Source: Epiperipatus broadwayi
Taxonomy: Eukaryota > Animalia > Onychophora
Length of the DNA stretch: 64,000 nt
Assembly (NCBI GenBank): GCA_028023455.1
Contig: JAQFVV010000008.1
Coordinates: forward strand, 11,346,001 to 11,410,000
Reading direction: 5' to 3'
The stretch's first letter is position 1, and every line of letters begins with the position of its first letter. The position numbers and the translations under genes were made by a program. Positions 1 to 59,566 of the stretch are shown piece by piece. The notes under the pieces are model-generated. The model worked only from the letters and a program-made list of their open reading frames with translations, did no database searches and was not told the DNA's origin.

Positions 1-1439
1 TTAGAAATGAAATAAAATAATTAGAATAGAAAATAGGCATGGCCACAGATTATAAAAAGGTCAAAATTATAACTGATTACAGTTACAGGAAAAATTATTA
101 CAAAGTTACATTTATAAGCGAGACTGTAAGTAAATGAAAATTTATAGCTAGCTTCATTTAAATATTATAAGTTTTTAAACAGATTTATAGAGATCTGCGG
201 TGAAGAAATATTACCAATTTTCTTCCAGGCTGAGTTATCCGGCATTTGTAGTAGGCACTTGATGTTTGCAGCATAAAAATCCATTAAAAAGAACATTCAA
301 ATTTTGAGGCTTTTTGAATGACATTATTTAGAGCTTTTTTCAAACAGATTGCAGCACATTTTATTAATAACAACAGATTAAAGAAGGTAGTTCAACTGGT
401 TATTTGGTGGTTTAAAAAATACAACAGTGGTGGCAAAAGTTAACAGCGGGCTTTAGCAAACAAGTATTTAAAGAAGATAGTTCCGTAAAATATAACATTC
501 CAATGCAATTTAAGAGGGCAGAACACTTTTACTTTGGAAAAACTACATTGCCTCATGTTTTGTCTTTGGGAGATCCCAAAGTTTCATCATTTGAGTAAGA
601 AAAGAAAGTAAGACACTATTGTAATGGTATGAAAAGTAGAGCTGCTTTGATCTAACCTAGAGATGTGAGTAGAGGGGGTTCAAACCTCACCTACTTCTCC
701 AGATTGCTACTAAGTGACTTACTCCCCAAACCTCACTAGAATTGATTCTTTATGTACGCCCGGTGGTCAGGGAGAGATGAAATCCCAAAGGGGAATTTTA
801 ACAAAGAAAAATCAGGTTTAGACTATATAATGAAAACACAGACAATTAATATATAATTGGATTAGTGAATGATATTTTTATTAGATGAAATAACAATAGA
901 AACGACAATTTGAAGACTAAAAGATAAAAAAATGTTGCAAGTTATTTTCTTGCATCTACAAACATAGATATGTATAGATGATATACATTAGTAAGATCCA
1001 TTTAATGTATTTTATACAATTGTATTGTTATGTAATAACAATACCATACTTAGCCAACAGCTGGATGCTTTACATTAAAGAGAGACACATAAAAACATAA
1101 CTCGAACGTGTAATTGAGAAACAGAAAAACATAACTTGAGGGTGAAATTACAAAAATGGATAATTGGTTAAACTAGTTAAGTAGATTAAGGCCATGTTCA
1201 AATATAGCCTGCATTTAAATGGTAAAATGAAAATAAATCCCCACCAGTAGACATTTTTCAGATTTACTCGGTAATATTTTGAGCATATTACAAAGTAAGG
1301 TTTTATCTATAATGAAATTAAGAACTATCGTGGTCCTTGGTGATTCAATTGTGTGAGTTTAGAAGCAAGTCTCGGGGCACAAAGATTTTTTATACACAGC
1401 TAACTTGGGTCTGAATAGCATTCCAGGTCTAACACATAG

Positions 1440-1640
1440 AGAAATGGAGCTCTCGTTTGCCGCAGCATGATCCGAGCTCCGGGCCAGAGTATAAGTGCTT
1501 GTGTCCAGTAGTAATATTTGAAAAGGGGGTCAAGATCCACTTTATCTTCAATGGCCATCTTGGAGCGGTGTTAAGCCGATTCATCATGGACGACGGGAGA
1601 TGTGGATGTGCCGAGACACCTACGAATCATTGAGTGGCAC
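1440..1640 (+). mobile_element. Possible R1-clade LINE 3' fragment (zinc-knuckle region)
   Basis: Translates HFIFNGHLGAVLSRFIMDDGRCGCAETPTNH*, resembling the R1-type TGHG.F..YL.RF......C.CG....H motif. Confidence 0.35.
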
Positions 1641-1929
1641 AATATAAGAGAAAAATGCGGTCAAACGACCATTAAACTTTAAAAACCCTGAGTAAATATA
1701 GGTATATGAAATAATATAACTTCAAAATGTTTTGAGGCCGAGAAAATATCCACTCTTAAAAACAATTATTACTTTACCCCTTTTAAATAGGAATATATAT
1801 ATATGAAATTATGTATATTAATTAATAATTACTCACTATTTAAAATTTTAATTTATATATATGACTGTACTGTCTCCTCACTTACATTTAAAAACTATGA
1901 ACGCTTAAGCTATATATGTTATATACATT

Positions 1930-3306
1930 TTGTAACGTTTATTTATATACGTTACAAATATATTGGCATTTGGTAGAAGCTAAAAAATAAAAGTAAATTT
2001 AGATTTTTTTTGACTAATTTTTTTTTAAAAAAATAACGTACAATGAAAAATTAAATTATTCTTTCGGTTTTTTTTTATGTAATTAGAAATAAAAGTTAGA
2101 ATTGGAGAGAACAAAAGACACAAATTACCAATCTAGATAAGAGAAAGTAAAAATATTTCAACTAATTAAAGATGGCAGAATTATGCTGAAAAAAATAGAG
2201 ACTTTGTAACATAAATTTTATAAAGAATATATAAGATTATCAACAAATATTTTGGCAAACAAAAGATATGCGCAGAAGTCGGAAAACTGGGCCTCTAGAG
2301 AGTATAAAAGGCAGAGATCAGTTTGAAGGACATCTTGTTCGTTGGTTTCTCTAGTTGGTCTTGGATAGCAATAATATATCCAAGATCACTCTACGCTGAA
2401 GTAATTCGGCATGTCGTAGTGAACCGGAGCCTCTGAAGACATCGTGCCTGAAGATGTATACCAGAAAAGCTTTCGTGACCGACTAGGAGAATGGACCACA
2501 GGATCAAATAATAACCAAAAGGCCGAGCTCATTCTACCCAAAAAACTATGCATTGTTATCTACTACTGAATGCACAAAACTTACCGGTAAGTTATACTTC
2601 ATTACTCCTGATTGTGACCAAATTAAACGTTTTCAAACAATTTCTAAAAGTATGTTTAAACAATCCCGATAGAGACATTAATTTTCTTGTACAAGAGACA
2701 TTCAATTTTTTTAAGGAAATTTCTAGAAGAAATTTAGATATGAACAGTAATTGTAAAATTGTTTTTTATCAATTGATTCACGTCTGAGTTGTGTTCTCTC
2801 TAAGTAATTTATTTCAAATATTTTTTTAGTCTATTAGAATAAAATTATTTCCAATACCAATTTTCATTTGTGCGTTATTAATAATAGTTATTATTTTTTA
2901 TTATTAAATCTATTAGTAGTTTAATAAGATTTAAAAATGTAATTTACCTTTGCCAATATGTTTGAATAAGCCCAGGAATAATAATCTTAAAAAAATTAAT
3001 TCTCGTTACGGTAGGAGGTAATACCGATTTGTTTAAAAGCATTTTTTTTCTGTTTAGTTTACGAGTTACAATATGTTTGACGCCGACTCAGTGGGTCTAA
3101 CGACTCTGGCGCCCTCATGTAGAAATTAAAAACTGAGTCAGCTCACGATTGTACTTAGCAATAATTCTAGGCCGAGTTGATCAGGAAATATAGCTATGTT
3201 TTTGGAATAGAAATATAACTTTCTTCTTTTTTTGACATAGCTTGATCAACTCATGCGCAGTTTATATTAGCGTGTAAGAGGCCTAGCAAAACGAAAAACG
3301 TTACAA
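1930..3306. mobile_element. Putative TIR element of unclear superfamily
   Basis: 11-bp perfect terminal inverted repeat ttgtaacgttt / aaacgttacaa. tatacatt duplicated at 1922-1929 and 3307-3314. Confidence 0.55.
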
Positions 3307-21839: not shown

Positions 21840-23480
21840 ATGATATTCCCAAAATATTATCAGTTCTTGAACCATGATCCGATAATATCTCATTATTCCA
21901 GAGAAGGTATAAATATCACGAAAAGCTATCATTCAGAGCATACTTTGTTCATTCTATATATTTAAATTATCTTTTCATTTAGCAGATATTTGATCTATAT
22001 AACATTATAAGTGTGCAAACACTAATTTATATTCACAGTGATGCAATGTAGATATCCATTCATTTAGCAAGTAATTAATTCATAAAACATTACAAGTGAA
22101 CAGATACCAAGTTTCATCCATGACAATGCTATGGAAATAGAACTCGTTTATTGCATATAAATATTTCGTAGAATTACATTTCCAGGTGAACATAATCTTT
22201 GTATACATTTTATGTTGTTAGCATTCAGACTTCAACATTGAAAAATACATAATACCCTTTTTTTAAAAGCAAATAAATATTCAGATGGTTTTTTAATACT
22301 ATGCATTAATTTTCATTCTTTCCTTAAATTATCATCTACAAATTCCCAACAATTCTGTCCGATTAATTGATGAATACTATTGCTTTCACTCCATCGTTAT
22401 ATCACTTTAATAATCATATACTTTTAAAAATAAATATAAAAAAAATCACATGAAATAAGATACAAGAGATAAGTTTAGACTGTTCCATCCTAATTTATAA
22501 TTTTTTTTTAATTGATGTCAGAGAAATTATAGCAATGTTCCGTATAACTCTTTGGTCAATTCCAGCCAACGTTACACAAATCTCATTACAACCATAATAA
22601 TAAATAAAAAAAATATTTCATATTACATATAACAAACATTTACATTTTCAAAATAGAAATAAGATTCTTTCACTTCAACATAAATTAAATAACATAACAC
22701 TTCATTTTTCCATACTACAATGGAATCATGCTTTTATACATATTTTCCAACACAATATTATACAAATAAAGTAACAAATATACTCGAGACATTAAATATT
22801 TAAGTGTATTATTTGTAACTTACTATTACAAATGCAGTAATAAAAATACATATAATAAAGAATAATAATTTCATCACTACTATAAACTTTATTATTTTCA
22901 CATTCATTTTTAAAATGAATAAAGTCAATTCACAATTTTTTTACAAACTACAAACAAACATTAACATTTCTTCTCCAATATTAGGGTTGTCATAGCAACA
23001 TAATCCAATACTCCCCAGGTTAATATATTCCCTATTAATATCAAACAAAAAAAAAATACCTTTTTTTTACAATTGACATCACACCACATTCGGTAGATAC
23101 ATCTCTCTCTACTTTTTTTAAAAAAAATTAAATAATAACTTTACTATTACTTTTAATGTACACACAAACCATTTTCACCAAAAAATATACAAATGTCTAT
23201 TTATTCTTCTCATTTTTTAGGTAGGTTTAACAATTTAATCATCATGAATCCTGGATACCTCATCAGTATATTCCCATTAAAATGAGGCAAAACTTAATTA
23301 CTCTTTTATTTCCTTCTTCTTTACATATTTCTATTACTTTATTGTATATCTCTATAAATAATACCCGAAAGACACCTTTACTAACAAAGAATTTGCTCAC
23401 CTAATGTTTCATTAACAGTGTACCATAAAATATAATTATATATCTGTATTCTTTTTAACCTTCATAAAATTTGTCAATTA
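21840..23480 (-). mobile_element. Older, highly decayed Gypsy-like pol remnant
   Basis: EILSDHGS (integrase DNG-like motif, ~21865-21895) and a frameshifted LTxGYW-like RT motif near 23000. Interrupted at its right edge by retrozyme B. Confidence 0.45.
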
Positions 23481-23482
23481 TA

Positions 23483-24091
23483 AATAGTCAATAAAAAATT
23501 AGTCATATATTACATGACCTAATCTTTTTAAGCTTGTAAATAAAAAACAATGAGTCCTATGCTAATTGCTCTAACAAGCTTTATTGATTAATGCCAGCAA
23601 GAGAAAGCATTTTAAAATCTCTATCTAGAAACCACACCCAAACCTCAGACCAATGGTTTCATGCTTTGGCATTCCTCAGTGAGATGCTAGGGTAGTTTCA
23701 GACATGATCTAAAAATACCAACCCAAAGCCAGTATTTATTGAAAAGTTATCTATTGAGCGGAAAATCTGAAATTTTCAGACACTTACATGTCTTCAAACC
23801 CAGCTATCCAACTCAAATAGCTATATGGGGCTGAGAGATCAGCCAAACCATATATTAATAGCCATAGCAATATAACATTGCTTAAGACTTTAATGCAAAA
23901 AACTGAAAGTTATATATCACATGACCTAATCTTTTTAAGCTTGTAAATAAAACAATGAGCTCTGTTCTAATAGCTCTAACTAACTTTATTGATAAATACC
24001 AGCAAGAGAAGGCAGAGATTTTAAAATGCTTTTTCTTGTTGGCATTTATCAATAAAGCTTGTTAGAGCAATTAGCACAGAGCTCATTGTTT
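23483..24091. mobile_element. Hammerhead retrozyme-like insertion B (~407-nt unit)
   Basis: Minus arm 23483-~24010 (acatgacctaatctttttaagc recurs at 23512 and 23919, period 407) plus an inverted arm ~24014-24091. Exact 13-bp direct repeat tttgtcaattata at 23470-23482 and 24092-24104. Confidence 0.82.
23644..23683 (-). ncRNA. Type I hammerhead ribozyme (family B), fully canonical core
   Basis: CUCA-CUGAGGA-AUGC-CAAA-GCAU-GAAA-CCAUUGG-UC^UGAG. Stem I extends through AU/GU, an internal loop, ACCC/GGGU and GAAAC/GUUUC. Predicted cut between 23648 and 23647. Confidence 0.9.
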
Positions 24092-24929
24092 TTTGTCAAT
24101 TATAGTTGCTAAAGCTTTACTATAAATTTGAAAATAACACTTTATATCTTTATCTCTTCCAATACCTTCTTATCAAAAATATAACCTGAAACTTATTATA
24201 ATTGATCGATATGATGTACTATATTTTCATATATTGAAACCAACTAACTTGTTCTTATATCACCAAAACATTAATAATGTTTCTTTCATATAACATGTTT
24301 CCAACTGGTTTATCCAATTTAGTATTCCATTTAAGATTACCTCCACTAATGATCCTTTGAAAATAAATTTATCATCCAGAACTTTTATTCATAAAGCAAA
24401 TTATTCAGTAGTCCTACTGAAAATTATTTAAGATCAACTATTGCTAATACCTTATAGTTATAAATTTTCATCATTTATTATATTTGCATTGTTACACAAA
24501 TATTTATATATCTCCTTTAAGCGATTTCAAAATATTCCTATCTTTAGGATTACATAACACTTCAAAATAATACATAAGGAGCTATGAACATAAATATTTA
24601 CGAAATCATTTATTCTTACCATATCTCATGCTATTTATATTCTATAATACTATATTTTTATCATTAATTAGTTCTGGTATCAAGTATTTCCACAACACAC
24701 AAAAATAGTATCAATATACTACTATTTCATAAATAACTTTTGTTCAACATGTTATATTTTAATCATATCCAAATTACAAAGATCTCACACCTATTTCTTT
24801 TTAAATATATACAGTATATTATCAACAACTAATATTGGGTTCAAGTTCAAACACTAAAGCATCATTTATTATATATATATAAGGTAAATTATACTCTAAA
24901 ATTTTTCTTTTTTCTTTAATGTCATGTCC

Positions 24930-43450: not shown

Positions 43451-44564
43451 TAAACAAAGGTTAGCTGATTTACATATAAATAAAGTAGTGGAGAAGGAAT
43501 ACATCTGTAAAATTAATGATTTGTAAGTTACTTACAAATGTATTTACAAAAGAGTTAAAAGAATTTTATAAAAGGGTAGTAAGAAAAAAGAAATTGTTAA
43601 AATTGGATATTTGAATATGCAAGGTGATAGGAGACCAGAAAGTGGCTAGAATTAAAAAAAACAGTTAAAAATAAAAAACTTGATGGATTATCCAAAAGAA
43701 CCTACACTGGAAGACTTGGTATGGGAGGGTATAAATAGAAAAGAAAAAATGTGGTTGTATAGGAATTATGTCCAAAAAAAAAATTGAAATATTGTTAAGT
43801 GTCAAGAATATTTGTGGTTTGAGATAATGTTAGGAAGACAAGAAATGGATGGTGGCTATAATGTGTATGACCCCTGGGCGTAGTCAAACTATAATGGCTT
43901 GGAACAAAAGCTAAGGATACACAGAGTTTCAAAAAAAAAAATGTAGAAAATAATGGTTATAGGGGATATGAATGAGCATATTGAAGAAATTGATGACATG
44001 GATAACAAGAATGGATAGCTTTTGAAGCCATTTTTGCCAGAGAGTGAATTTGAGCAAATATTACAATCTAGAAATAATATATTTCACACAATAGATTATG
44101 TATTAGTAAAGAAAAAGGAAATGAATAAAGTATGAAAAATTAAAGTGTTTGATAATGAAGAGATAGTATATGTAATAGTGATCATAACTTCTTTAGAATA
44201 GAAATGTGAGGGAAAATAGTAATAAAAGTAGAAAGGATAGTGAAAGATTTGGATGGAGACTGAACGATAAGAATAAGTTAGAAGACTATAAAATAAAAGT
44301 AGAAGAAATCATGGAAAACTTTGGTTGAGGGTGAGTGTAAGGACAGGTGTGATGAAGTAGAAAAAGTGGTAAATAGGTTTTATGCGAGAATACTCAGAAG
44401 AATAAAAAGTCAATAAACATCACATGACCACCTCCTCTTATGCTTGTGTATAAACAGGCAAAACTCACTATATATATATTACCACAGACAGCAAGCTAGA
44501 GTAAGCAATGGATGCCAGAAGGCTTGTGCATAAAATCCCCATCTAGTGCCTACTTATCCAATAT

Positions 44565-44604
44565 CCCCAGACTAGTTTCTCACTTATGGCCTTCGTCAGT
44601 GAGG
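44565..44604 (-). ncRNA. Type I hammerhead ribozyme (family A), stem II damaged
   Basis: Same core, but the stem II 3' strand reads GUG instead of GCC. Lies 451 nt from the 45016 copy. Confidence 0.7.
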
Positions 44605-45015
44605 AGCTTGGATCTGAGAGCACTGTACCTAGATCTTAGGATCTAATGCAACCTTCCAGCAACCACCTTTTATCTCCATTTAACTACAAAACTATGGGTT
44701 TTAAATTGAAAACACCTTAATGTTTTCAATCCAATCCCATTAGCTTATAGTCATATGGGTCTGAACCCAGTTCAGTACCCATACATTTTGGTGTCTTTGG
44801 TTCTTAAATAACCATAGCCACCACTATCCTATTAGGCAGGATTGGTTTAAGCCAATAAACATCACATGGCCACCTCCTCTTATGCTTGGGTATAACTGTT
44901 GTTAAAACAGGCAAAACTCACTATATATATTGCCACAGACAGTAAACTAGAGTAAGCAATGGATGCCAGAAAGCTTGTGCATAAAATCCCCATCTAGTGC
45001 CTACTCATCCAATAT

Positions 45016-45055
45016 CCCCAGACTAGTTTCTGGCTTATGGCCTTCGTCAGTGAGG
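45016..45055 (-). ncRNA. Type I hammerhead ribozyme (family A), sense to host pre-mRNA
   Basis: Reverse complement is identical in the 40-nt core to 45549-45588. Predicted cut between 45021 and 45020. Confidence 0.82.
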
Positions 45056-45548
45056 AGCATTGGAACTGAGAGCACTGCACCTAGATCTTAGGATCTAATG
45101 CAACCCTCCAGCAACCACCTTTTATCTCCATTTAACTACAAAACTGAGTCTTAAACTGAAAACCCTTCAATGTTTTCAAACCAAGCCCATCCATTGCTTA
45201 CTCTAGCTTGCTGTGTGTGGCAATATGTATAGTGAGTTTTGCCTGTTTTAACAAGTTATACACAAGCATAAGAGAAGGTGGTCGTGATGTTTATTGGCGT
45301 AAAACCAATCCTGCCTAATAGGATAGTGGTGGCTATGGTTATTTAAGAACCAAAGACACAAAAATGTATGGGTATTGAAATGGGTTCAGACCCATATGAC
45401 TATATAAGCTAATAGGCTTGGATTGAAAACATTAAGGTGTTTTCAGTTTAAGACTCATAGTTTTGTAGATAAATGGAGATAAAACTTTTTTGCTGGAGGG
45501 TTGCATTAGATCCTAAGATCTAGGTGCAGTGCTCTCAGATCCAAAGTT

Positions 45549-45588
45549 CCTCACTGACGAAGGCCATAAGCCAGAAACTAGTCTGGGG
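45549..45588 (+). ncRNA. Type I hammerhead ribozyme (family A)
   Basis: CCUCA-CUGACGA-A-GGC-CAUAA-GCC-A-GAAA-CUAG-UC^UGGGG. Stem I CCUCA/UGGGG, extended past an internal loop by AUCCAA/UUGGAU. Stem III is the palindrome ACUAGU. Predicted cut at 45583/45584. Confidence 0.82.
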
Positions 45589-48127
45589 ATATTGGATGAG
45601 TAGACACTGGATGGGGATTTTATGCACAAGCCTTATGGCATCCATTGCTTACTCTAGCTTGCTGTGTATGGCAATATATATAGTGAGTTTTGCCTGTTTT
45701 AAGAATAAAAAGTAATAGAAAAGTGAGACTTAGCAAAAGTGTAAAAGGGGAAAAAGCATGCAGATAATATAAATGTGCCATTTAAAACAAAGAAGGTGGA
45801 AAAGATGATAATATTAAATGGAAAAAGTATTTTTAAAAAAAGAGGTTGGCTAATATTAAATGGAAAAAGTATTTTTTAAAAAAGAGGTTGGCTAAATAGA
45901 TAATTATAGAGTATGAAATTAAATAAATTGTTGGAGGATATTAATAAAAATGGAAGAGATGGTACTAAGAAATGTTGGAAATATATTAAAAGAAGGAATG
46001 TAGGGGAGAAAAAAATAGTATTACTAGAAAATGAAGAAATGAAAGGTAGCTGTTGAGAGGAATTAGAGATTATCTTAAATATGTAATAGATATAAAAAAG
46101 ATGTTAGGTGTGAAGGAAAGAGTGATAACTAGCATAAAAGCATATAGTAATGGAAATATTAGATTTACAGAAAATAAACTGAATGAAGCAGGAAAAAAAT
46201 TCGGAAAAATGGAAAGGTAAGAGGTTTAGATAGATGGATAGAAGAGATGGTGGATGATTTTAGGAAATAGGGCAAAATTAAATCTATTGTCATGTTTTAA
46301 TAAGATGACACTGAAGAGAGAATTTTCAGATAGCTGGAATAATAGAAGAGCAAGGCTGCTATTTAAAAAAAAGGGTAAAAATCATAGAAAGTTAAACAAT
46401 TATAGACCGATAGCAGTAACGTCAGTGTCATATAAAGTTTTTGTATTTATTTGTTGCAAAATGGATGGAATAAAATAATGTAATGGAAGAAATGCAAGAA
46501 GCATTGGATAGGGGTGTAGGAGATAGTTTATTTGTAGTCACACAAATAGATTATGGATAAGTTTAATAAATTTGGGAAAGGATGGAACTTTAGTGGATCG
46601 TATTAAGAGATTGTATGAAAATAATTAGTAAATGTATCAATTAGGAAATATAGAATCAGTTTAAGTTAAAAATGGGGTGGGACTAAGGCAAGGATGCTAT
46701 ATGTCACCTATTTTGTTTTTCTTATATTTGAGAGAAATGGTGAGAGCAGTAGAAAGATAGATAGTGGGGTAAAGATACCATTAATAGGTGGCAAAGAAGT
46801 ATATACATTATCAGGTCTTTTATTTGCAGATATCTTCTTGTGCATAGAAAATAAGGAAGATATGAAAGTGATGCTGAAGACATGCGTAAGGGTGAGTAAA
46901 AAGTTAGGGATTAAATTTAGTAAAGAAAAATCAAAAGTAATGATGATAAATGCTGGGAAAAGAGAAGAGAAAGAATTTTTATTATGGGATAAAGTTAAAT
47001 GTGGTGAGCAGGTATAACTATTTGGGAATCATCTTAAATCACAGAACTTGCTTGGATGAATGAGAGAAAAAATTGATAGATGTAGCAAAGACTGATAAAG
47101 AAATTAACAGTGTTTTCATATAATAAATATGATGTAGCTAGAATTGTATGGAAGAGAGTAGCAGCAACAGGATTAACATATGATAAATGATGTGTTAGTA
47201 AAGGGGTATTAGATTACTTAGAAAAAGTACATAGAAGTAGGAAGAAAGCCTTAGATGAAGATGTGTGGACAGCAAAGATAATTCAAGAAAAAATGGGATG
47301 GTCAAGTTTTTATATGAGAGATGCAAAAAGCAAAATGAAAATGTTCGGTAGACTGCAATTTATGGATAATAAGAGAATAGCCAAAATAGTATTTAATTGG
47401 GTTATGAGTAAAAGTCAGGCAACAGGATGGGTAAGTAGGATAGTACAGCATGGAGATTTTGGATGAAGAATTTATGTCCGTATACTTACACAAATGGTGG
47501 GGTGATTGTGTTAGAATTGTTGTGTTATAGTGGCAAGGAATGGGATAGAAGAATAGATGCATTAATAATAAAAAAAAAGAGAATTGGAGAGATGAACTAG
47601 TATGGCGAATAAAAAACTTTAAATATATATATAGAAGTGAACAGAATATTGGGTGCGAGATAATTTATGATAATAGCAAGGAAAGTAGTTTATTGTTTAA
47701 GGATAAAACAGAATCTTTAGCAACAAGGAATTATACACATAAATGGAAAAATATGGGTGATTTAGATTGCAAGTTATGTAAGAAAGTCTTAGAAAATATT
47801 ATACATCTGTTAATTGAATATAAATTGCCTGCAAGCAGAAACGGTTCAATAATGAAGTTGTGGGATAATAAATATAAACGAAGTGATTATACAGAAAGTG
47901 GATTCTTGGTTTTTATGCTAGGTTTGGGAAAAGGGGGATTTAGATATAAAGGCCATAGAATTGAAAAAGATTATGTTGTGGAAATAGGAGGGAGCAGAAT
48001 AGAAAAGAACATAGGAAAAACTTAGGATGAGAAAGGGAAAAGGTAAGGTGGCTAACAGGTTTCTCTGGGCAAAATGGCTGTGAGTTTCCATATTTCGAGA
48101 AAGAAGAAGCCACAGTGCATCACATAC

Positions 48128-51380: not shown

Positions 51381-53901
51381 GAGTTACAACACACATCTAA
51401 GTTATGGCTTGAAAATTTCATTGCAAAATTTAATTTTGTTCCGAGTTATTGTGAAAACAAAATTCAGTCAAACACTAATACACAGACATCATTAGAATTG
51501 CTGAAAGATATTTTAAAAGCTTTAATTGAAAATAAAAATCGTTTTCTGGCATAATAACAGTGTTTCAACTTCTGCTACTATATTCCATATATTGGAAAGT
51601 AATAGCTTTTATTACGTTTCGCCCATTAGGAAGCTTGGAGAAATCCATGTGCCCTATAATCAGAAAAGTTTCGTTCTTTCATTTTACTATCAAAAAAAAA
51701 ATTAATATCTGATGAAATTGTTTTTTTTTTTTCCTTAGAAAATACTGTTTTAAAAAAAAAGAAAATTGTAATTCTGAGTAAATTTCTTAATGTTTGATTT
51801 ATATCAACAACAATTGGTCAGTTCTAAATTACAGGGCATTCTTTTTATGTTGGCAATTGCCATAGCTTCTTAATGCTAATATATCAAACTATTATTATGC
51901 ATCCAAAAGTCAGAAGTAATTTTTTATTACATCTTGTAATAATAATATTATAATGAATAGAACATAATTGAAAATTGTTTTTATTAAACTTCAGCAATTC
52001 CTTTGCATTTAAGACAGATATGGGATTGTAAAATTCCAAGACATTGTCCAAAACTGTGCTTGTTTTGAATTAACAAGTGATTGAAACAACTATATATTTT
52101 AATGATGTTAGTAGATCTATTTTTAAAATATATGCAAATAAAATTTGAATTTAAATAATTTATAAATAAAACAATAAATACCTAACCTTTAATAAAAAGA
52201 ATCTGTTAGTAAATTCTTAAGAATAATTTGGAATTTTTATAAAAAATAAAAAAAAAAAAACATTATCGTATTTTTTTTTTTTTTAATTTTTTAAATTAAC
52301 ACATTCGTATTTTTAAATAAAACTTTGCAGAGTTTACAATTGATGAGAAAAGATTTGTACAATTACAAATTTTTCACAAATTTATGAAAAACTGATTATT
52401 CATATTCTGAAAATAAAAATATTTGCAATTAGGATTTGGGTTTATTTGTATGTACACATATGGAATATACACTTCATGTTGTATATTGCTGTCATCAGAT
52501 GTGGAATACTTACATTCAGGCCAAGTTATATAAAATGTCCTTATTCAGTATAGCTGCAAATAAGAATCATTAATGCCCATTACAATATATCATCTAAAGA
52601 GATGTTTGGTAGCAATCAAAAGAAAAACTTCCACAAGTTATAAAAGACTAAGATGGAAGATCTAGTTATGAAAAAAAATATATTTCATATTAAGAAATTA
52701 TATTTATATTCATGACCTGAATCTTTGTTTTGAGTACATATAATATGTATTTTCATTTTCTTTTGAATTACTGGTCCTATGAATCTGATATATACTAAGA
52801 TCAGCTAGAAATTTTAACGATTTTTGGGTAACTTCCTATATTTATCTTACAATAGTATATTACAAATAAAATTATTTAGATGGAAGCAAAAGTCTCAAAT
52901 GTACAGTATTTATCAATCAAAGTTTAAACAAATAAAAAATATTTAAAGGCCTAGAAAAGAGGCTCCTCTTTTACACTCTAAAATTTTTATTAGTTATCCT
53001 GAAGATACTATAACAACAAGAATTCATATTGGTGTAATTTGCCAATATAGCTTCGCAATATAGATCAAAAATTCTTTCAAAATTATTTTCAATAACATTC
53101 AATTACAGCAATTTTTCAATCAGCAAGTTGTCAGTAAAGCTCTATCACAGAATGAAAAGAATAACTACTGGATAGGCAACACAAATCAATTCCTATAAAT
53201 CCTTATTAGAAATACATTTCCACTTTGTTAATGCAGCCCAATTAGTTATATCAAATTAGATACTTATTTTTTGATTTTGCATGCGATCTACTTTTCAGTT
53301 TTATATTTAATTATACATATATGTATATATTCTTAAAATATAAATTTCAATTAACTGAAAATGAATATAATGAAAAAAATAAATAGTTGCCTAGTAATTC
53401 AAGTGATAATATACATTTTTAAATCCATTTTGCATTTTTAAATATATATACACTGTATGACTTTCTTTTTGTTATTTTCCTTTTAAATGGAATATTTTTT
53501 TTCTTCTATAAATCACCCCCCCCCCCTTTTTTTTTGTTCTTCACAATTACTTGTTTCATAAACCATACATGAATATTTCACTAAATTTTTTACATCTGAA
53601 AAAAAATAATCAAACAATGAAATATCCATCAAATTGTACATGCAAACTACAATAATTTTGTAATATTATTTCAATAACATGATAATAAATATGCTGTAAA
53701 GAAAATATAACATACATGAAATACATATTTCAGTCATAAGTTTCCTTGCAAATAGTTTCCACAAACTCTCTACTTCCATCCAATATTGCTAGCAATTACT
53801 TAAGTCTTGTCATAATGTAATGATTTTGAACTGAATTCTGTTTTGGTTTACGTGCATAAAGATTTTCCCACATTTACCATAATTATTAGGAAACATGAAA
53901 T

Positions 53902-56900
53902 CATCATCATCATCATCATTATCAACCATTATCAATCCACTGTAGGATGAAGGTCTCTCCAAGTTTAATCCATCTTCTCCGATCTTTAGCTTCTCTTCTC
54001 CACATCACCCCTACACATTTTCTTATTTCATCCATCCATCTTACATGTGGTCTCCTTCTGGGTCTTTTACAATCTCTTGGAATCCGGTTTAAAATTTCAA
54101 TTGTCCATCTATTATCATCTCTTCTAGCAATATGTCCAGCCCAACTCCACTTCAATCTTTTAATTTTTTCAATGAGGTCAGTAACACCTGTTTGTTCTCT
54201 TACCCATACATTGCGTTTTCGATCTCTTCTTGTTACTCCCAACATACATCTCTCCATACTTCTTTGAGTGGTCTGAAGTCTCTGTATTGATCTTCTATTA
54301 AGTGTCCAAGTCTCAGATCCATAAGTAAGAACTGGTAAAACACATTTGTTAAAAACCTTTCTTTTCAAACACATAGGCATATTTCCTTTTAGTATCAAGT
54401 TATTTCTACCAAAAGCACTTCCAACCAAGTTTAATTCTATGATTAATTTCCTCTATTATGTTTCCATCTGTATTAATAATCTGACCAAGGTATTTGTAAC
54501 TCTTAACTTCTTCTAATTCATCATAATCAATCTTTATTTTCATATTTTGAGCAAATCGATTAAACATTACTTTAGTCTTTTTAACATTTATCTTTAGTCC
54601 TACTTTCATCTGATAACTCCTGCAACATTTCCTGCAGCTCGGAAGCATTATTTGCAAAAACAACTACATCATCTGCGAAATCTAAATGACTTAAATAATC
54701 TCCATTTACTTTCACTCCTTTAGTTTCCCATTTTAATCCACAAAATACTTCTTGCAGCACTGCTGTAAAAAGTTTTGGAGATATGGAGTCACCTTGTCTT
54801 ACACCTTTCTCAATGTTGACTTTCCCAGTATCATTATGTAATCTAATTGTTGCTGTTGCATTTTTATAAATATTCTTTAAAATATGACAATATCCTGGAT
54901 CTATACCTTGATGATCCAATGCTTTAATCACTGAAGAAATGTTTATAGAATCAAATGCCTTTTCATAATCTACAAATCCAAAACATAATGACAACTCATA
55001 TTCATTTGTCCTTTCTATAACTTCTCTCAATACTTGAATATGATCTACTGTACTAAAACCACTTTTAAATCCAGCTTGTTCTCTTGGTTGGTGAAAATCC
55101 AAGGTTCTCTGTAGACGAGTTGTAATTATCTTGGTAAAAATTTTATATAAAACTGATAAAAGGCTGATAGGTCTGTAATTTCTAATATCTTCTTTATCAC
55201 CTTTTTTAAATATTAATATTATTACTGCATTCTTCTAATCATCCGGTACATCTTTATCATTTAGACATTTGGTATATAACTTTGCTAATATTTTTTCTGT
55301 TTCTTCACCTGCTTCTTTTAATATATCAATTATAATTCCATCATTACCTGGAGCCTTTCCTTTTTTCATACATTTAATTGCATTTCTCACTTCTTCATTT
55401 AAAATTCAGGGCAATTCGGAAGATGTAATAGATATAGGAGGTACTTGTTCTTTATTACTATATAATTCTTGATAAAAATCTTCTACCAATTTCATAATGT
55501 CATCCCTCTTTTAGTAATAATTCCATCTTTTTTCCTTATTGCAGATATAAATTTCCTACCAATACCAAAATGTTGTTTTACATTCTTAAGACTTTTATTT
55601 TCTTCTACAGCTTTTCTTGCTAGTTCACAGTTATACTTTCTTATATCATTTTCAACTCTTTTCCGCACCATTTTACAAAATTCGAGATATTCAATTCTTT
55701 TTAATGCATTATTCTTGCATATCTTCATATTCCTTCTTTTCTTCATAAATTCTCTAGTCTCAGTAGAAATTTTATTGGTCAATTGCTGCTTTTTTCTACC
55801 AGCTATCTTTGTTGCAGTTTTTAAAAGTGTATCAGTTATTTTCATATTAATTTCATTCAAATCTGAATCATGTTCAAAATCTACTAATACTTGAAACCGA
55901 TTTGTAAGTTCTAATTTAAATTCATTAGAATGTTTCTGAAGATTAGGAATATCAACTGTAAATATAGTTTTTCTTAATAATTTTTGTCTCTCTAGTTTTA
56001 CATTAACATGTATCTTACCCCTTACTAATCGATGATCACTTCCTGTGTTAAATTTATTAAGAACATTACAATCTTGAAATATGTATTTCCTGTTAGTCAA
56101 AATATAATCCAATTCTGCTGTACCTTCATTTGGATGCTTCCATGTCCATTTCCTTCTAACATTTTTCTCAAAAAAAGAATTCATAATATAAAGTTTTTCC
56201 TTCTCTGCAAACTCCACAAGTCTATGTCCTCTCTCATTTCTATTACCATAACCAAAATTACCTACAACACTTTCATCTTTCATTTGTTTACCAATTCTAG
56301 CATTAAAATCTCCCATAACAAGGAACCGAGCAGGGCAAATTCCTAATGTCCACTCCATACGTTCTTGTCGTTGCAGCTGTTATTACTATATGTTTATTCA
56401 TATAGTATACGAACATGGATGGGCTGCTCACCAATACGCATTAGCCAGCATGGTGAGTTTATTAGCTTTTTACCTCTGAGTTTAAGATCAAGAAACACCA
56501 TGGTCTTTCTTCTCAGTGCCTGATAAGGCAGAATGAATGTTTGTGTAAATGATAAAGATTTTTCCCAATTATACAATTATGATAGACAAAAATAAAGCAT
56601 GGCCCTTAATCCCAGGAGGCTGTAAAGTCACCAACCAAGGCAGCGGTTGGTGGCCGAAGGCGGAGGGTGCTAAGAATATCCTGGAGGCGGACCCAGGCTG
56701 CCATTTGATGACGACTTTTTATTTAGGTACTTACAACTGCAGATCACTTTCAAGTGAAGGAAGATTGCAAGAATTAGAAGAAGAACTCTCTTATATTAAA
56801 TGGGATATTATTGGACTTTGTGAAGTTAGAAGAAAAGGTGAAGAGACAATTGATTTAAAAAGTGGACATATGCTCTATTATAAAGGCACAAATATTGGAA

Positions 56901-57127
56901 ATACAAGTGGAGTAGGATTCATTATAAATAAAAAGTGGAAGAACAATATTGTGGAGATTGATGGTGTATCAGACAGAGTGGCAAGATTAGTTATACAACT
57001 TAATAGCAGATATCAAATGCAGATAATTCAGGTTTATGCCCCAACAAGTTCTCACAGTGATGAAGTAGTAGAAGATTTTTATATGGATGTACAAAAGGCT
57101 TTTGATCAGAGTAAACAACATTTTTTT
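53902..57127. mobile_element. RTE-clade LINE, near full length, with 5' inversion
   Basis: Minus arm ~56325-53902: VMGDFNARIG...SDH endonuclease C-half, RT (HQPREQAGF, GVRQGDSISPKLF, FADD) and a (GAT)n tail. Plus arm ~56326-57127: putative 5' UTR and endonuclease N-half (GTYNCRSL...IIGLCEVRR...QVYAPT). TSD aaacatgaaat at 53891-53901 and 57128-57138. Several stops and frameshifts. Confidence 0.93.
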
Positions 57128-57777
57128 AAACATGAAATACCTAGCAATATAAGTGAAAGTTTGATCTGCAAACTTAAATTTTCCCTCTAGTACCCAATAA
57201 ATACAAATTTTATTTTTTCTAATAATTTTATTCAAATTCAATATATGAAATGTCTATAATATATAAAGATCATTAATATCTGCAATTTCAAATTGCTAGA
57301 AATTTTTTAATAAAAAAAATCAGACTAATTTTTCCAAACTGGTAATAAATATCTCATTTTTACTGGAAATTTTAAAACCATGTAGTTATTATCAATAACC
57401 AAAAAAAAAAAAAATTCCTTATTGTTATTCTTTGATATTTTCAAACCATCTGAAAGTGGCATTGTTAAAATCAGTAAAAAGTCAATAATCAATAAAAGTG
57501 AAAACAAAAGGGGTAAATCCTCATGTCATTGTTATTGTACTTTTTATTCTATAAGACCATATGTAATATAGCTTAAATATGAAATGAAGTATAAATATAT
57601 TTGCAAATTAAATTTTCATTACGTAATTAGAAATTGTAATACACAAAAAATAGAAGCAAATATTATTACTAGCAGCAGCAGCAGCCGTTTATAAACAAGT
57701 ACGGCCAATTTAACAACAGGAAAAAAAAATTAAAGATAAAGAATAAAAAGTTGAATATGAGTTTTGTGCTGATTACA

Positions 57778-57853: not shown

Positions 57854-58542
57854 TATAAATTGATCATTTAGCCCATTTACTTGACATTTTTTTGGATATC
57901 ATTTACTTCTGCAATAATCTTTACTTCAAGATCTTTTAATTGTAACTCACTATTGAATTCTATCCTCAGCCATATTTTACCAATGAAAATGATATTGTTT
58001 AAATAAATACAAAGTTTTATGAAATGACAAAAAAAAAAAAAGGCTCTCTCTGAGATTATAAATAATAAGTTTATAATTGTAAATAATGAAAAACATAAAT
58101 TATTTGCATTAAGAGGAAGTAAATAATTCTTCAGCAAAGAGTACTTTATCTCAATACTACTTCTAGTCAATGTCCAAAAACTAGTTTAGAGGTACAAATA
58201 TACAATTATTATCTATTTTCCAGTGGTTATTCTAATTTAGTTAATTAATGTCTCTAATAGAGATATTGAATTAAAATAGATAAAGCCATAGGTGCCTAAT
58301 TTGATAAAAAAAAAAAATTGATATTGAAAATATCATTTAAAAAAATGTATAATTTTATTAAATGCATGATTAAATGCTAAACATGAATATACTTTTATAG
58401 ACATAAAGTAAATGAGAACTTAGCCATATACATTAATCAAGCAATAAATAAAAATGAAATAATGGAGGAAGGAGCAAACCATAATATTTTACATACACAC
58501 ACATTAATTACATAAATATTTATAATAATTTCAAATATTTAC

Positions 58543-59566
58543 CGATGTTTTCTATGTTTCCTCGGAAAAGAAAGCGAAACTGATCTCTCGGCTGATCTTG
58601 AACTACTTCTGGAATGCGAATATCTTATTTTTTTTCTAGAATAATTCCTCCGATGTTTTGAAGAATCTGAACTAGATGAATATCTGCTTGATGATCGAGA
58701 ACGTGACCGTGAAGATTCTTCAGAATAACTGTGAGATTTATTACGATAAGAATGTTTTCTTTTTGAATTTCGTGAACGATGGTGACTATTTCTTCGAGAA
58801 TATCTATTTGACAATGAATCTGATCTACAATGAGACTTATAATCCGAAGAATTATCACTGCTACTATCGTGTTTAATATAATCTGAGTTTTCTGAATAAT
58901 AAGAATAAAAACCTGAAATTCTTTTATCATATTTTTCTGAATCTGAAGTATTAGATTCCAGACTGGTATCTAAAACTTCTCCATCTTCAATATCACTATC
59001 AGAACAATTTTTAATTTTCTGATATTGAATTGGAAGAATCTTTTTCTTAGGAACATTTTTTTCAGATAAATTTAATGAGAGATTTTTTTCAAGTGAATAT
59101 TCATTTTTTTCAATAATTTTATTTCTGCATTTTTGAACTTCATTTTCATTTGTTTTTAAAGTTTCAACTAAGCTGTCTTTAAGTACATTTAATGAAGGTC
59201 CTTTAACATCTTCACTAGATGTATTTGTATCACTTTCATTAATATTAAAAATTTCAGGTAATTTTGTGGATTCGTTTGTTAAGGCATTCAAAAAAGTACA
59301 TTCATTTTGAAAAAATTCATCAGGTTTTTGAAATGATGCCACTAAATCTTCAGGTGTAAAATTCTTAACTTCATCTTCTTCAAGTCCAACCACATCAATA
59401 ATTTCATCTTCTTCCTTTAAGTCATCAACAGATTGTATCCTTATTACATTTGAAATATCAATGGAAAATGGTTTCATTTCACTGGCAATGTGTGCTGTTT
59501 TACTTGAAATAGTTGCTTTTCTGCTAGTTATGCAAGATGTAACAATTTTTTTTTCAGATGGTTGCT
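58543..59566 (-). CDS. srl/PPARGC1: PGC-1/PRC (spargel)-family coactivator, large acidic + RS-rich exon
   Basis: Open frame of 1024 nt (2+340 codons+2) from acceptor ttattttag|AG (AG at 59568-59567) to donor CATCG|GTAAAT (GT at 58542-58541). Encodes ...SDSDIEDGEV...SRSRSRSSSRYSSSSDSS...RKHRKH(R). Family assignment rests on the downstream RRM exons. Confidence 0.85.

Follow-up and report, generated by a model that had tools for sequence, protein, structure and literature searches.

An RTE-type retrotransposon with an inverted 5' segment in Epiperipatus broadwayi: probable twin priming, and a Penelope-type footprint in retrozymes of the same genome

A single RTE-type insertion with an inverted 5' segment

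The locus described here lies in a 64,000-nt stretch of the genome of the onychophoran Epiperipatus broadwayi (assembly GCA_028023455.1, contig JAQFVV010000008.1, positions 11,346,001 to 11,410,000 of the forward strand), which is referred to below as the window and in which coordinates are given unless another sequence is named. The host genome is large (5.6 Gb) and AT-rich, with a G+C content of about 27% in the window. At 53902-57127 the window contains a single insertion of an RTE-type long interspersed nuclear element (LINE) that is bounded by an exact 11-bp target-site duplication (TSD), AAACATGAAAT, and has the 5' part of the element in reverse orientation to the remainder. Two other inserts in the window, at 44411-45702 and 23470-24104, are retrozyme-like. 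A preliminary description, made from the sequence alone, had attributed the structure of the RTE copy to twin priming and had gone on to propose that the RTE machinery mobilises the hammerhead retrozymes. The analysis presented here bears out the first of these claims and not the second.

Positions within the element (nt) are those of a natural full-length copy, L002:629-3917 (3289 nt plus tail), which was used as the coordinate reference instead of a consensus. A whole-genome search with the window stretch returned thousands of candidate relatives, of which about 40 were scored as copies and found to be 96-100% identical. The 40 non-self copies of the working sample were picked in two ways, 11 of them by their 5' untranslated region (UTR) and 29 by similarity to the body of the element, and relatives of the window copy are overrepresented among them.

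Read from left to right, the locus begins with the left TSD copy (53891-53901), an exact direct repeat that abuts the (GAT)n tail of the element. This microsatellite tail (53902-53921, minus strand), which reads TAATGATGATGATGATGATG, constitutes the entire 3' UTR and directly follows the stop codon at 53922-53924. It forms the end of the direct, or 3', segment (53902-56321, minus strand; nt 873-3289), which encodes the endonuclease C-half, the reverse transcriptase (RT) and the C-terminal region. The Pfam matches on this strand are PF14529 and profile positions 145-225 of PF03372, representing the C-half of an apurinic/apyrimidinic (AP)-type endonuclease, followed by PF00078 (RVT_1). At the inner junction (56320-56321), where nt 873 of the direct segment meets nt 64 of the inverted piece, the two alignments overlap by 2 nt (AA/TT). 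The inverted 5' segment (56320-57124, plus strand; nt 64-868) carries most of the 5' UTR and the endonuclease N-half, which ends ...DQSKQHF. Its first in-frame ATG lies at 56549 and the second at 56709, and the N-half is matched on the plus strand at 56720-57127 by profile positions 1-97 of PF03372 (Exo_endo_phos). Three extra T that are not part of the element (57125-57127, plus strand) occupy the outer junction and are followed by the right TSD copy (57128-57138), again an exact direct repeat.

Several features of this arrangement had been recognized in the preliminary description. The 11-bp TSD and the outward-facing 3' ends were described correctly: exact copies of AAACATGAAAT stand at 53891-53901 and 57128-57138, at ends that are defined by homology. 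The endonuclease N-half is indeed present on the plus strand, but the piece to which it belongs is 805 nt long (56320-57124) and includes about 390 nt of 5' UTR. The C-half had been thought to resume on the minus strand at FLVMGDFNARIG, near 56325; the strand is right, but the true restart is at TTGTTATGG (56321), (I)VMGDF, and the 'FL' of FLVMGDFNARIG is an artefact of the junction, where the reverse complement of the 5'-UTR piece has been read as protein. Finally, the break had been called almost seamless, and the two pieces do abut, but AAAA is missing at the inversion point and three T have been gained at the outer junction.

The breakpoints were defined by comparison with other members of the family. 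In about 40 other copies, the sequence corresponding to window(+)56320-57124 lies directly upstream of that corresponding to window(-)56321-53903, on the same strand and with 4 nt between them. These 4 nt, AAAA at nt 869-872, are the ones missing from the inversion point of the window copy. The outer junction is also unique to it: the other copies read T4A4 at this position (38/38), and the window copy alone has T7, which is followed by the AAA of the TSD. Comparison of upstream flanks placed the true 5' end of the element 63 nt beyond the start of the window copy, at GGCTGCAGAAAGG..., with nt 1-63 being absent from the window copy. The element ends were set independently by homology to about 40 other copies, and the TSD copies sit exactly at these ends. 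For fixed positions at this base composition, the calculated probability of a chance 11-nt match is about 2e-6, and mismatched flanks used as a control seldom match over 9 bp. The two pieces are equally diverged from L002, with differences at 4 of 805 positions (0.5%) in the inverted piece and 12 of 2417 (0.5%; 11 substitutions and a 1-nt insertion at 54420) in the direct segment, which is thus 99.5% identical to the reference. The reading frame of the direct segment is broken in several places, and it carries the A4 frameshift allele discussed below. With its head inverted, its first 63 nt absent and its frame broken, the window copy is dead. Both flanks of the insertion were searched against the assembly, and the flanking DNA was found to be single copy.

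The same geometry was observed at different breakpoints in two other copies, L036 and L037, which had been chosen solely for holding the 5' UTR. In L036, nt ~29-543 are inverted and followed by nt 568 onward, leaving a 24-nt gap, while in L037 an inverted piece consisting of nt 64-644 and a variant 5' end is followed by nt 667 onward, with a gap of 22 nt. Inverted copies were therefore found among 2 of the 11 non-self copies picked by the 5' UTR and among none of the 29 picked by the body. Nineteen further copies, retrieved in a search with the 805-nt 5' piece that was unable to show inversions, are colinear at least through nt 868. The variant 5' end of L037 (L037:1860-1895, body orientation) resembles the first 30 nt of the element, stands after the inverted 5' end and is preceded by TACCCCCCCCTCGC. 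It possibly reflects extra nucleotides added at the 5' end of the RNA, or else a subfamily difference.

The RTE family and its normal insertion footprint

The full-length copy of the element is 3289 nt long and encodes the AP-type endonuclease (APE) and the RT in one frame of about 995 codons; ORF1 (a first open reading frame, ORF) is absent. Nothing follows the stop codon except TAA(TGA)n-type repeats, such that the 3' UTR is the trinucleotide repeat alone, and 3-7 RAT repeats were present at the 3' end of every copy for which this end was available (29/29). The copies are 99.1% identical to one another in pairwise comparisons. They differ at an A-run located at window 55509-55512 (element nt ~1682-1685), which is A4 in 25 copies, including that of the window, and A5 in 12 (L002-L042). 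A5 keeps the frame open, whereas A4 shifts it and splits the ORF into parts of 469 aa and 526 aa. The frame is open from nt 293 to past nt 1924 in A5 copies and over nt 1699-3279 in many copies, and no single copy read had it open across all ~995 codons. Most of the young copies thus share a 1-nt frameshift. Since the A4 group is both very young and numerous, it was either mobilised in trans by intact relatives or is read through by frameshifting.

In its overall design, the element resembles RTE-1, BovB and their relatives, with which it shares a length of about 3.3 kb, a single APE-RT frame, a 3' UTR made of short tandem repeats and TSDs of 10-12 bp. The shared 1-nt frameshift (A4) of most young copies is where it differs from them. 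Homologues of the RT were found in insects at 45-57% identity, under names that are uninformative for clade. Those of the APE (45-65% identity) come from a scorpion, the coelacanth, Lepidoptera, beetles, echinoderms and cnidarians, and are widely named 'craniofacial development protein 2-like'. The craniofacial development protein 2 gene carries an endonuclease domain derived from RTE-1/BovB.

In normal copies of the family, TSDs outside microsatellites measure 8-13 bp (median 11), and in 10 of 11 copies the TSD has A as its first base and stands directly after a T. The window copy fits this profile, with 11 bp and the context ggt|ATTTCATGTTT in element orientation. Published RTE TSDs peak at 10-12 bp (PMC6007223, PMC4245944), and the first TSD base of RTE elements has been tied to the microsatellite-like tail repeat (PMC6007223). 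Roughly one third of the sampled copies lie within (AT)n microsatellites (L003, L006, L009, L015, L019, L021, L025, L028 and L030), and nearly all of the TSDs begin with AT directly after the ...GATG of the tail. This suggests that pairing of the tail repeat with the target helps to choose the priming site.

Potential base-pairing was also noted in the 5' UTR. Within the first 160 nt of the full-length copy (L002:629-790), nt 1-7 (GGCUGCA) can pair with nt 116-122 (UGCAGCU), beginning with a G1-U wobble, and a perfect hairpin of 9 bp spans nt 128-151. By eye, an HDV-like ribozyme is recognisable here only in part. Starting at nt 64, the window copy is without the 5' strand of the first of these helices. 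A search of the full-length copy L002 against Rfam found nothing.

Twin priming as the probable origin of the inverted copy

We consider it very likely that the window copy is a young non-LTR (non-long-terminal-repeat) retrotransposon of the RTE clade that arose in one insertion, through target-primed reverse transcription combined with twin priming. Inside a single TSD pair lie two pieces of the same element that abut and do not overlap, both with their 3' ends pointing outward, and L036 and L037 repeat this geometry, which is in line with what the preliminary description had concluded for the window copy. The anatomy, the breakpoints, the TSD, the equal divergence of the two pieces and the recurrence of the geometry in other copies are all direct observations.

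The events at the target would have proceeded as follows. A bottom-strand nick at a T|AT site would prime on the (GAU)n tail of the RNA, which would be copied back to nt 873. A second nick 11 bp away would free a top-strand 3' end (...CATGTTT) that could anneal to the same RNA at its A4 run (nt 869-872). As the upstream TSD copy ends in TTT (element orientation) and can pair with A4, extension of this second primer would give an inverted piece beginning at nt 868, and copying would continue back to about nt 64. Joining of the two cDNA ends at the 2-nt microhomology would then yield the inverted 5' quarter, the 4-nt loss at the inversion point and the one 11-bp TSD around the insert. We infer the order of the priming events and likewise the origin of the three extra T, which may have arisen by slippage in the U4 run or by untemplated addition.

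These features closely parallel mammalian LINE-1 (L1) twin priming, as far as the work of Ostertag and Kazazian (2001) is represented in the papers citing it (PMC4245944, PMC6007223). Common to both are a single TSD pair, a tailed 3' piece, an inverted upstream piece, a small deletion, a TSD of at least 10 bp and, possibly, short stretches of microhomology where the second strand is primed and at the inner junction. What sets the present case apart is that the element is a LINE of the RTE clade, that its tail is (GAT)n and not poly(A), and that its host genome is AT-rich, invertebrate-like and 5.6 Gb in size. It has been argued that 5' inversion needs a 3' overhang of at least 10 nt (10-20 nt) to pair with the RNA (PMC4245944), and an RTE element with 11-nt overhangs is consistent with this model of overhang length. 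When 5' inversions were examined in cell assays, nearly all occurred with human L1 in human cells (PMC4245944), and RTE is therefore a less documented clade for this outcome.

An alternative to inversion during integration is that a normal colinear RTE insertion had its first ~800 bp flipped later by an inversion at the DNA level. Anatomy by itself, an inverted 5' piece inside an intact TSD, cannot formally separate the two, and searches with the flanks retrieved no empty or uninverted allele from the assembly that might do so. A later inversion would nevertheless need one of its breakpoints to hit the boundary between TSD and element exactly and the other to lose only 4 nt, and there are no inverted repeats at the breakpoints that could drive recombination. 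It would also have to account for L036 and L037, where the geometry recurs with different internal breakpoints and is again anchored to the boundary of the insertion. In addition, 5'-end joining in retrotransposition typically leaves such marks as the missing first 63 nt and the apparent 2-nt microhomology. We therefore regard a later flip as very unlikely. The chance that two independent events were involved, a 5'-truncated RTE (nt 873-end) and a separate fragment of nt 64-868 in the opposite orientation, is next to negligible: 5' truncation is common in the family and LINE fragments can nest, but the fragment has no tail or TSD of its own, both pieces lie inside one TSD and share the same 0.5% divergence from L002, and their abutment within 4 nt in element coordinates would be very unlikely if they were independent.

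A number of points weigh against twin priming or against the strength with which it can be put forward. The simplest twin-priming model does not foresee three additional T at the outer junction. The microhomologies, TTT with A4 (3 nt, with the three extra T intervening) and AA/TT at the inner junction (2 nt), are short and AT-rich, so they could be due to chance. The frequency of inversion comes from a small and biased sample, and the 3' ends of L036 and L037 lie beyond the sequence read, leaving their TSDs unseen. When both flanks were searched in the assembly for an empty-site allele, only the window itself matched, leaving no allele that could show a single copy of the TSD before insertion. 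Lastly, the element is assigned to the RTE clade by its architecture and the names of its homologues, and is best called a probable member.

Taking twin priming as the origin of the window copy, the insertion shows a known mechanism cleanly and at base resolution in a little-documented clade, and is otherwise ordinary. A broader proposal is that 5' inversion by twin priming is a regular outcome, at several per cent or more, for the RTE-clade LINE with ~11-nt overhangs in this genome. This is possible but doubtful. If it were true, twin priming would extend well beyond L1, and the idea that the length of the overhang, not the LINE clade, decides whether the second strand is primed on the RNA would gain support.

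The retrozymes share little with the RTE element

To examine the proposed partnership between RTE and the retrozymes, the insert at 44411-45702 (L043) was compared with 29 further genomic loci, giving a sample of 30 loci (L043-L072) from one family. L043 is flanked by a 13-bp TSD, AAGAATAAAAAGT, and spans 44398-45715 with its TSDs included. A CUGACGA...GAAAC motif at 45538-45600 is predicted to adopt a hammerhead-like fold in which helix I is long and helix II short. No hammerhead was matched by Rfam in the window, either at the gathering threshold or at E<=10, and the retrozyme label therefore rests on the motif and the fold. The best sub-threshold Rfam match in the window was mir-3618 at 23976-24065 (39.9 bits, E=3.8e-5, gathering score 99). 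This match coincides with the junction at which the two arms of the second retrozyme insert (23470-24104) meet head to head, and is most likely the hairpin formed by the inverted arms and not a microRNA gene.

Nearly all of the loci (28/30) are two-armed, invariably with the minus arm on the left and the plus arm on the right. A 449-nt unit is repeated in tandem within each arm, which exceeds one unit in length, and both arms hold the same 3' region. The outer ends are fixed: 25 of the 28 two-armed inserts have one outer end at unit position 445-453 and a second that extends 37-54 nt beyond it. In L043, for example, it is the left (minus) arm that reaches 43 nt deeper into the unit than does the right (plus) arm. 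The ends also appear to be coupled across L043-L072, with one short and one long end per insert and almost never two alike. TSDs were counted only when they reached 9 bp, a length rarely attained by mismatched flanks used as a control, and on this basis 19 of 28 inserts have a TSD of at least 9 bp, with a mode and median of 13 and most falling between 12 and 17 bp. Bases just outside the 13-bp TSDs look enriched in G/C (about 55-60%, against about 27% G+C in the window), in what is a small sample. Within an insert, the two arms have a median identity of 90.5% (maximum 94%), and the units of different loci are 93.8% identical.

The case for RTE as the mobiliser had been built on TSDs of 11-13 bp and divergent arms as a common signature. 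It is true that the TSD lengths overlap (9-13 bp for RTE, mostly 12-17 bp for the retrozymes) and that both kinds of insert can have outward 3' ends. The RTE family is also active and abundant, with thousands of candidate copies, and its frameshifted A4 subfamily suggests that RTE RNAs can be mobilised in trans. Against this, blastn comparisons of RTE with either retrozyme gave only what is expected of shuffled sequence, with no match at the 3' ends. (GAT)3 or (ATC)3 was found near an end in none of the 28 retrozyme inserts, whereas all 29 RTE copies have the tail. The arms of a retrozyme insert repeat one region and have two fixed ends, while in inverted RTE copies the end of the second arm varies and lies within the element. 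Tandem multimers make up the retrozyme arms and are never seen in RTE copies, and two-armed structures make up 28 of 30 retrozyme loci as opposed to 2 of the 40 non-self RTE copies. The literature, moreover, assigns animal retrozymes to Penelope-like elements (PLEs) (PMC7761336; bioRxiv 10.64898/2026.07.22.740005). We consider mobilisation of these retrozymes by the RTE enzyme to be extremely unlikely.

The preliminary description had looked to TSD and target profiles and to overlapping periods of activity as the places where a partnership should show, and we ran both comparisons. The TSD medians are 13 bp for the retrozymes and 11 bp for RTE (Mann-Whitney p=0.0013), and T is found directly before the TSD in 3 of 15 retrozymes as against 10 of 11 RTE copies, the samples being small in both cases. 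With regard to age, retrozyme arms within an insert are 90.5% identical as compared with 99.1% between RTE copies. The sampled retrozyme family is thus about 10x more diverged than the RTE burst, and the 90.5% and 93.8% identities of its arms and units indicate that it was active long before that burst, a conclusion that applies to the sampled family. Because TSD length, nick context and age all differ, the proposal fails for this retrozyme family on the grounds by which it was to be judged.

Non-coding elements that do depend on RTE provide a useful comparison. Short interspersed nuclear elements (SINEs) of this kind, namely the Au-like SINEs, AfroSINEs and Bov-tA, are copied by RTE, have RTE-like TSD lengths and share the 3' end and microsatellite tail repeat of their RTE partner (PMC6007223). 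The retrozymes studied here, in contrast, share neither a 3' end nor a tail with RTE. A partnership between RTE and hammerhead RNAs is therefore not supported, and the RTE copy in the window tells nothing about how retrozymes are mobilised. For the sampled family, RTE mobilisation is already largely refuted, and a role of RTE enzymes in producing a minority of atypical retrozyme copies is much less likely than the regular 5' inversion of RTE copies considered above.

A Penelope-like footprint

What the retrozymes do resemble is the published insertion footprint of Penelope, which comprises partial tandems, a head-to-head inverted copy and a one-sided tail (PMC8557442, PMC3846280, PMC11167929). 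PLE inserts with inverted pseudo-long terminal repeats (pLTRs) have TSDs of 8-10 bp, one of them verified against an empty site, and a 31-bp tail (PMC3846280). This contradicts the premise of the preliminary description that PLE inserts typically lack such clean TSDs. A purified PLE protein nicks and extends both strands, and its reverse transcription starts at two adjacent internal sites that delimit the tail (PMC11167929). PLEs have also been named as likely mobilisers of retrozymes (PMC7761336; bioRxiv 10.64898/2026.07.22.740005). In their partial tandems, head-to-head inverted copy, one-sided tail, short TSDs and candidate hammerhead motif, the retrozymes of this genome are like the PLE inserts and animal non-LTR retrozymes of these reports (PMC8557442, PMC3846280, PMC11167929, PMC7761336, bioRxiv 10.64898/2026.07.22.740005). 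The tail is the point of difference, at 30-40 nt in published PLEs and 37-54 nt here.

Matches to the Penelope endonuclease are plentiful in the genome. A search for GIY-YIG, the Penelope endonuclease domain, gave at least 10,242 candidate matches, and all 150 that were scored exceeded the Pfam cut-off. The matches, for instance at G000:C6351:2388234-2389184 and C12394:20942626-20950119, make up 20 minus-then-plus (head-to-head) pairs within 5 kb and no plus-then-minus (tail-to-tail) pairs. Same-strand tandem pairs lie about 3.1 kb apart. As some of the matches fall within frames that are open for 870-901 codons, the genome probably contains intact Penelope-like elements.

To sum up this comparison, the anatomy of the inserts gives the retrozymes a Penelope-like footprint marked by two strands, fixed start sites and tandem units. 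The absence of a shared 3' end or tail, the fixed as opposed to variable arm ends and the Penelope-type footprint all speak against RTE. Every discriminating feature points to Penelope-like machinery, and the likeness to RTE is confined to TSD length and outward ends. Which enzyme moves a non-autonomous element can thus not be told from TSD length and outward arms alone. The features that do separate RTE from Penelope products within one genome are a tail repeat versus none, variable internal ends versus two fixed ones, non-overlapping pieces versus inverted repeats, and the presence of tandem units.

A neighbouring reading frame

An ORF is located on the minus strand at 58539-59477, 1.4 kb from the RTE insertion. 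It comprises 312 codons from its ATG, within an open frame of 359 codons. It had no match in Pfam, and a whole-genome search with it matched only itself; it may be a single-copy host gene or exon.

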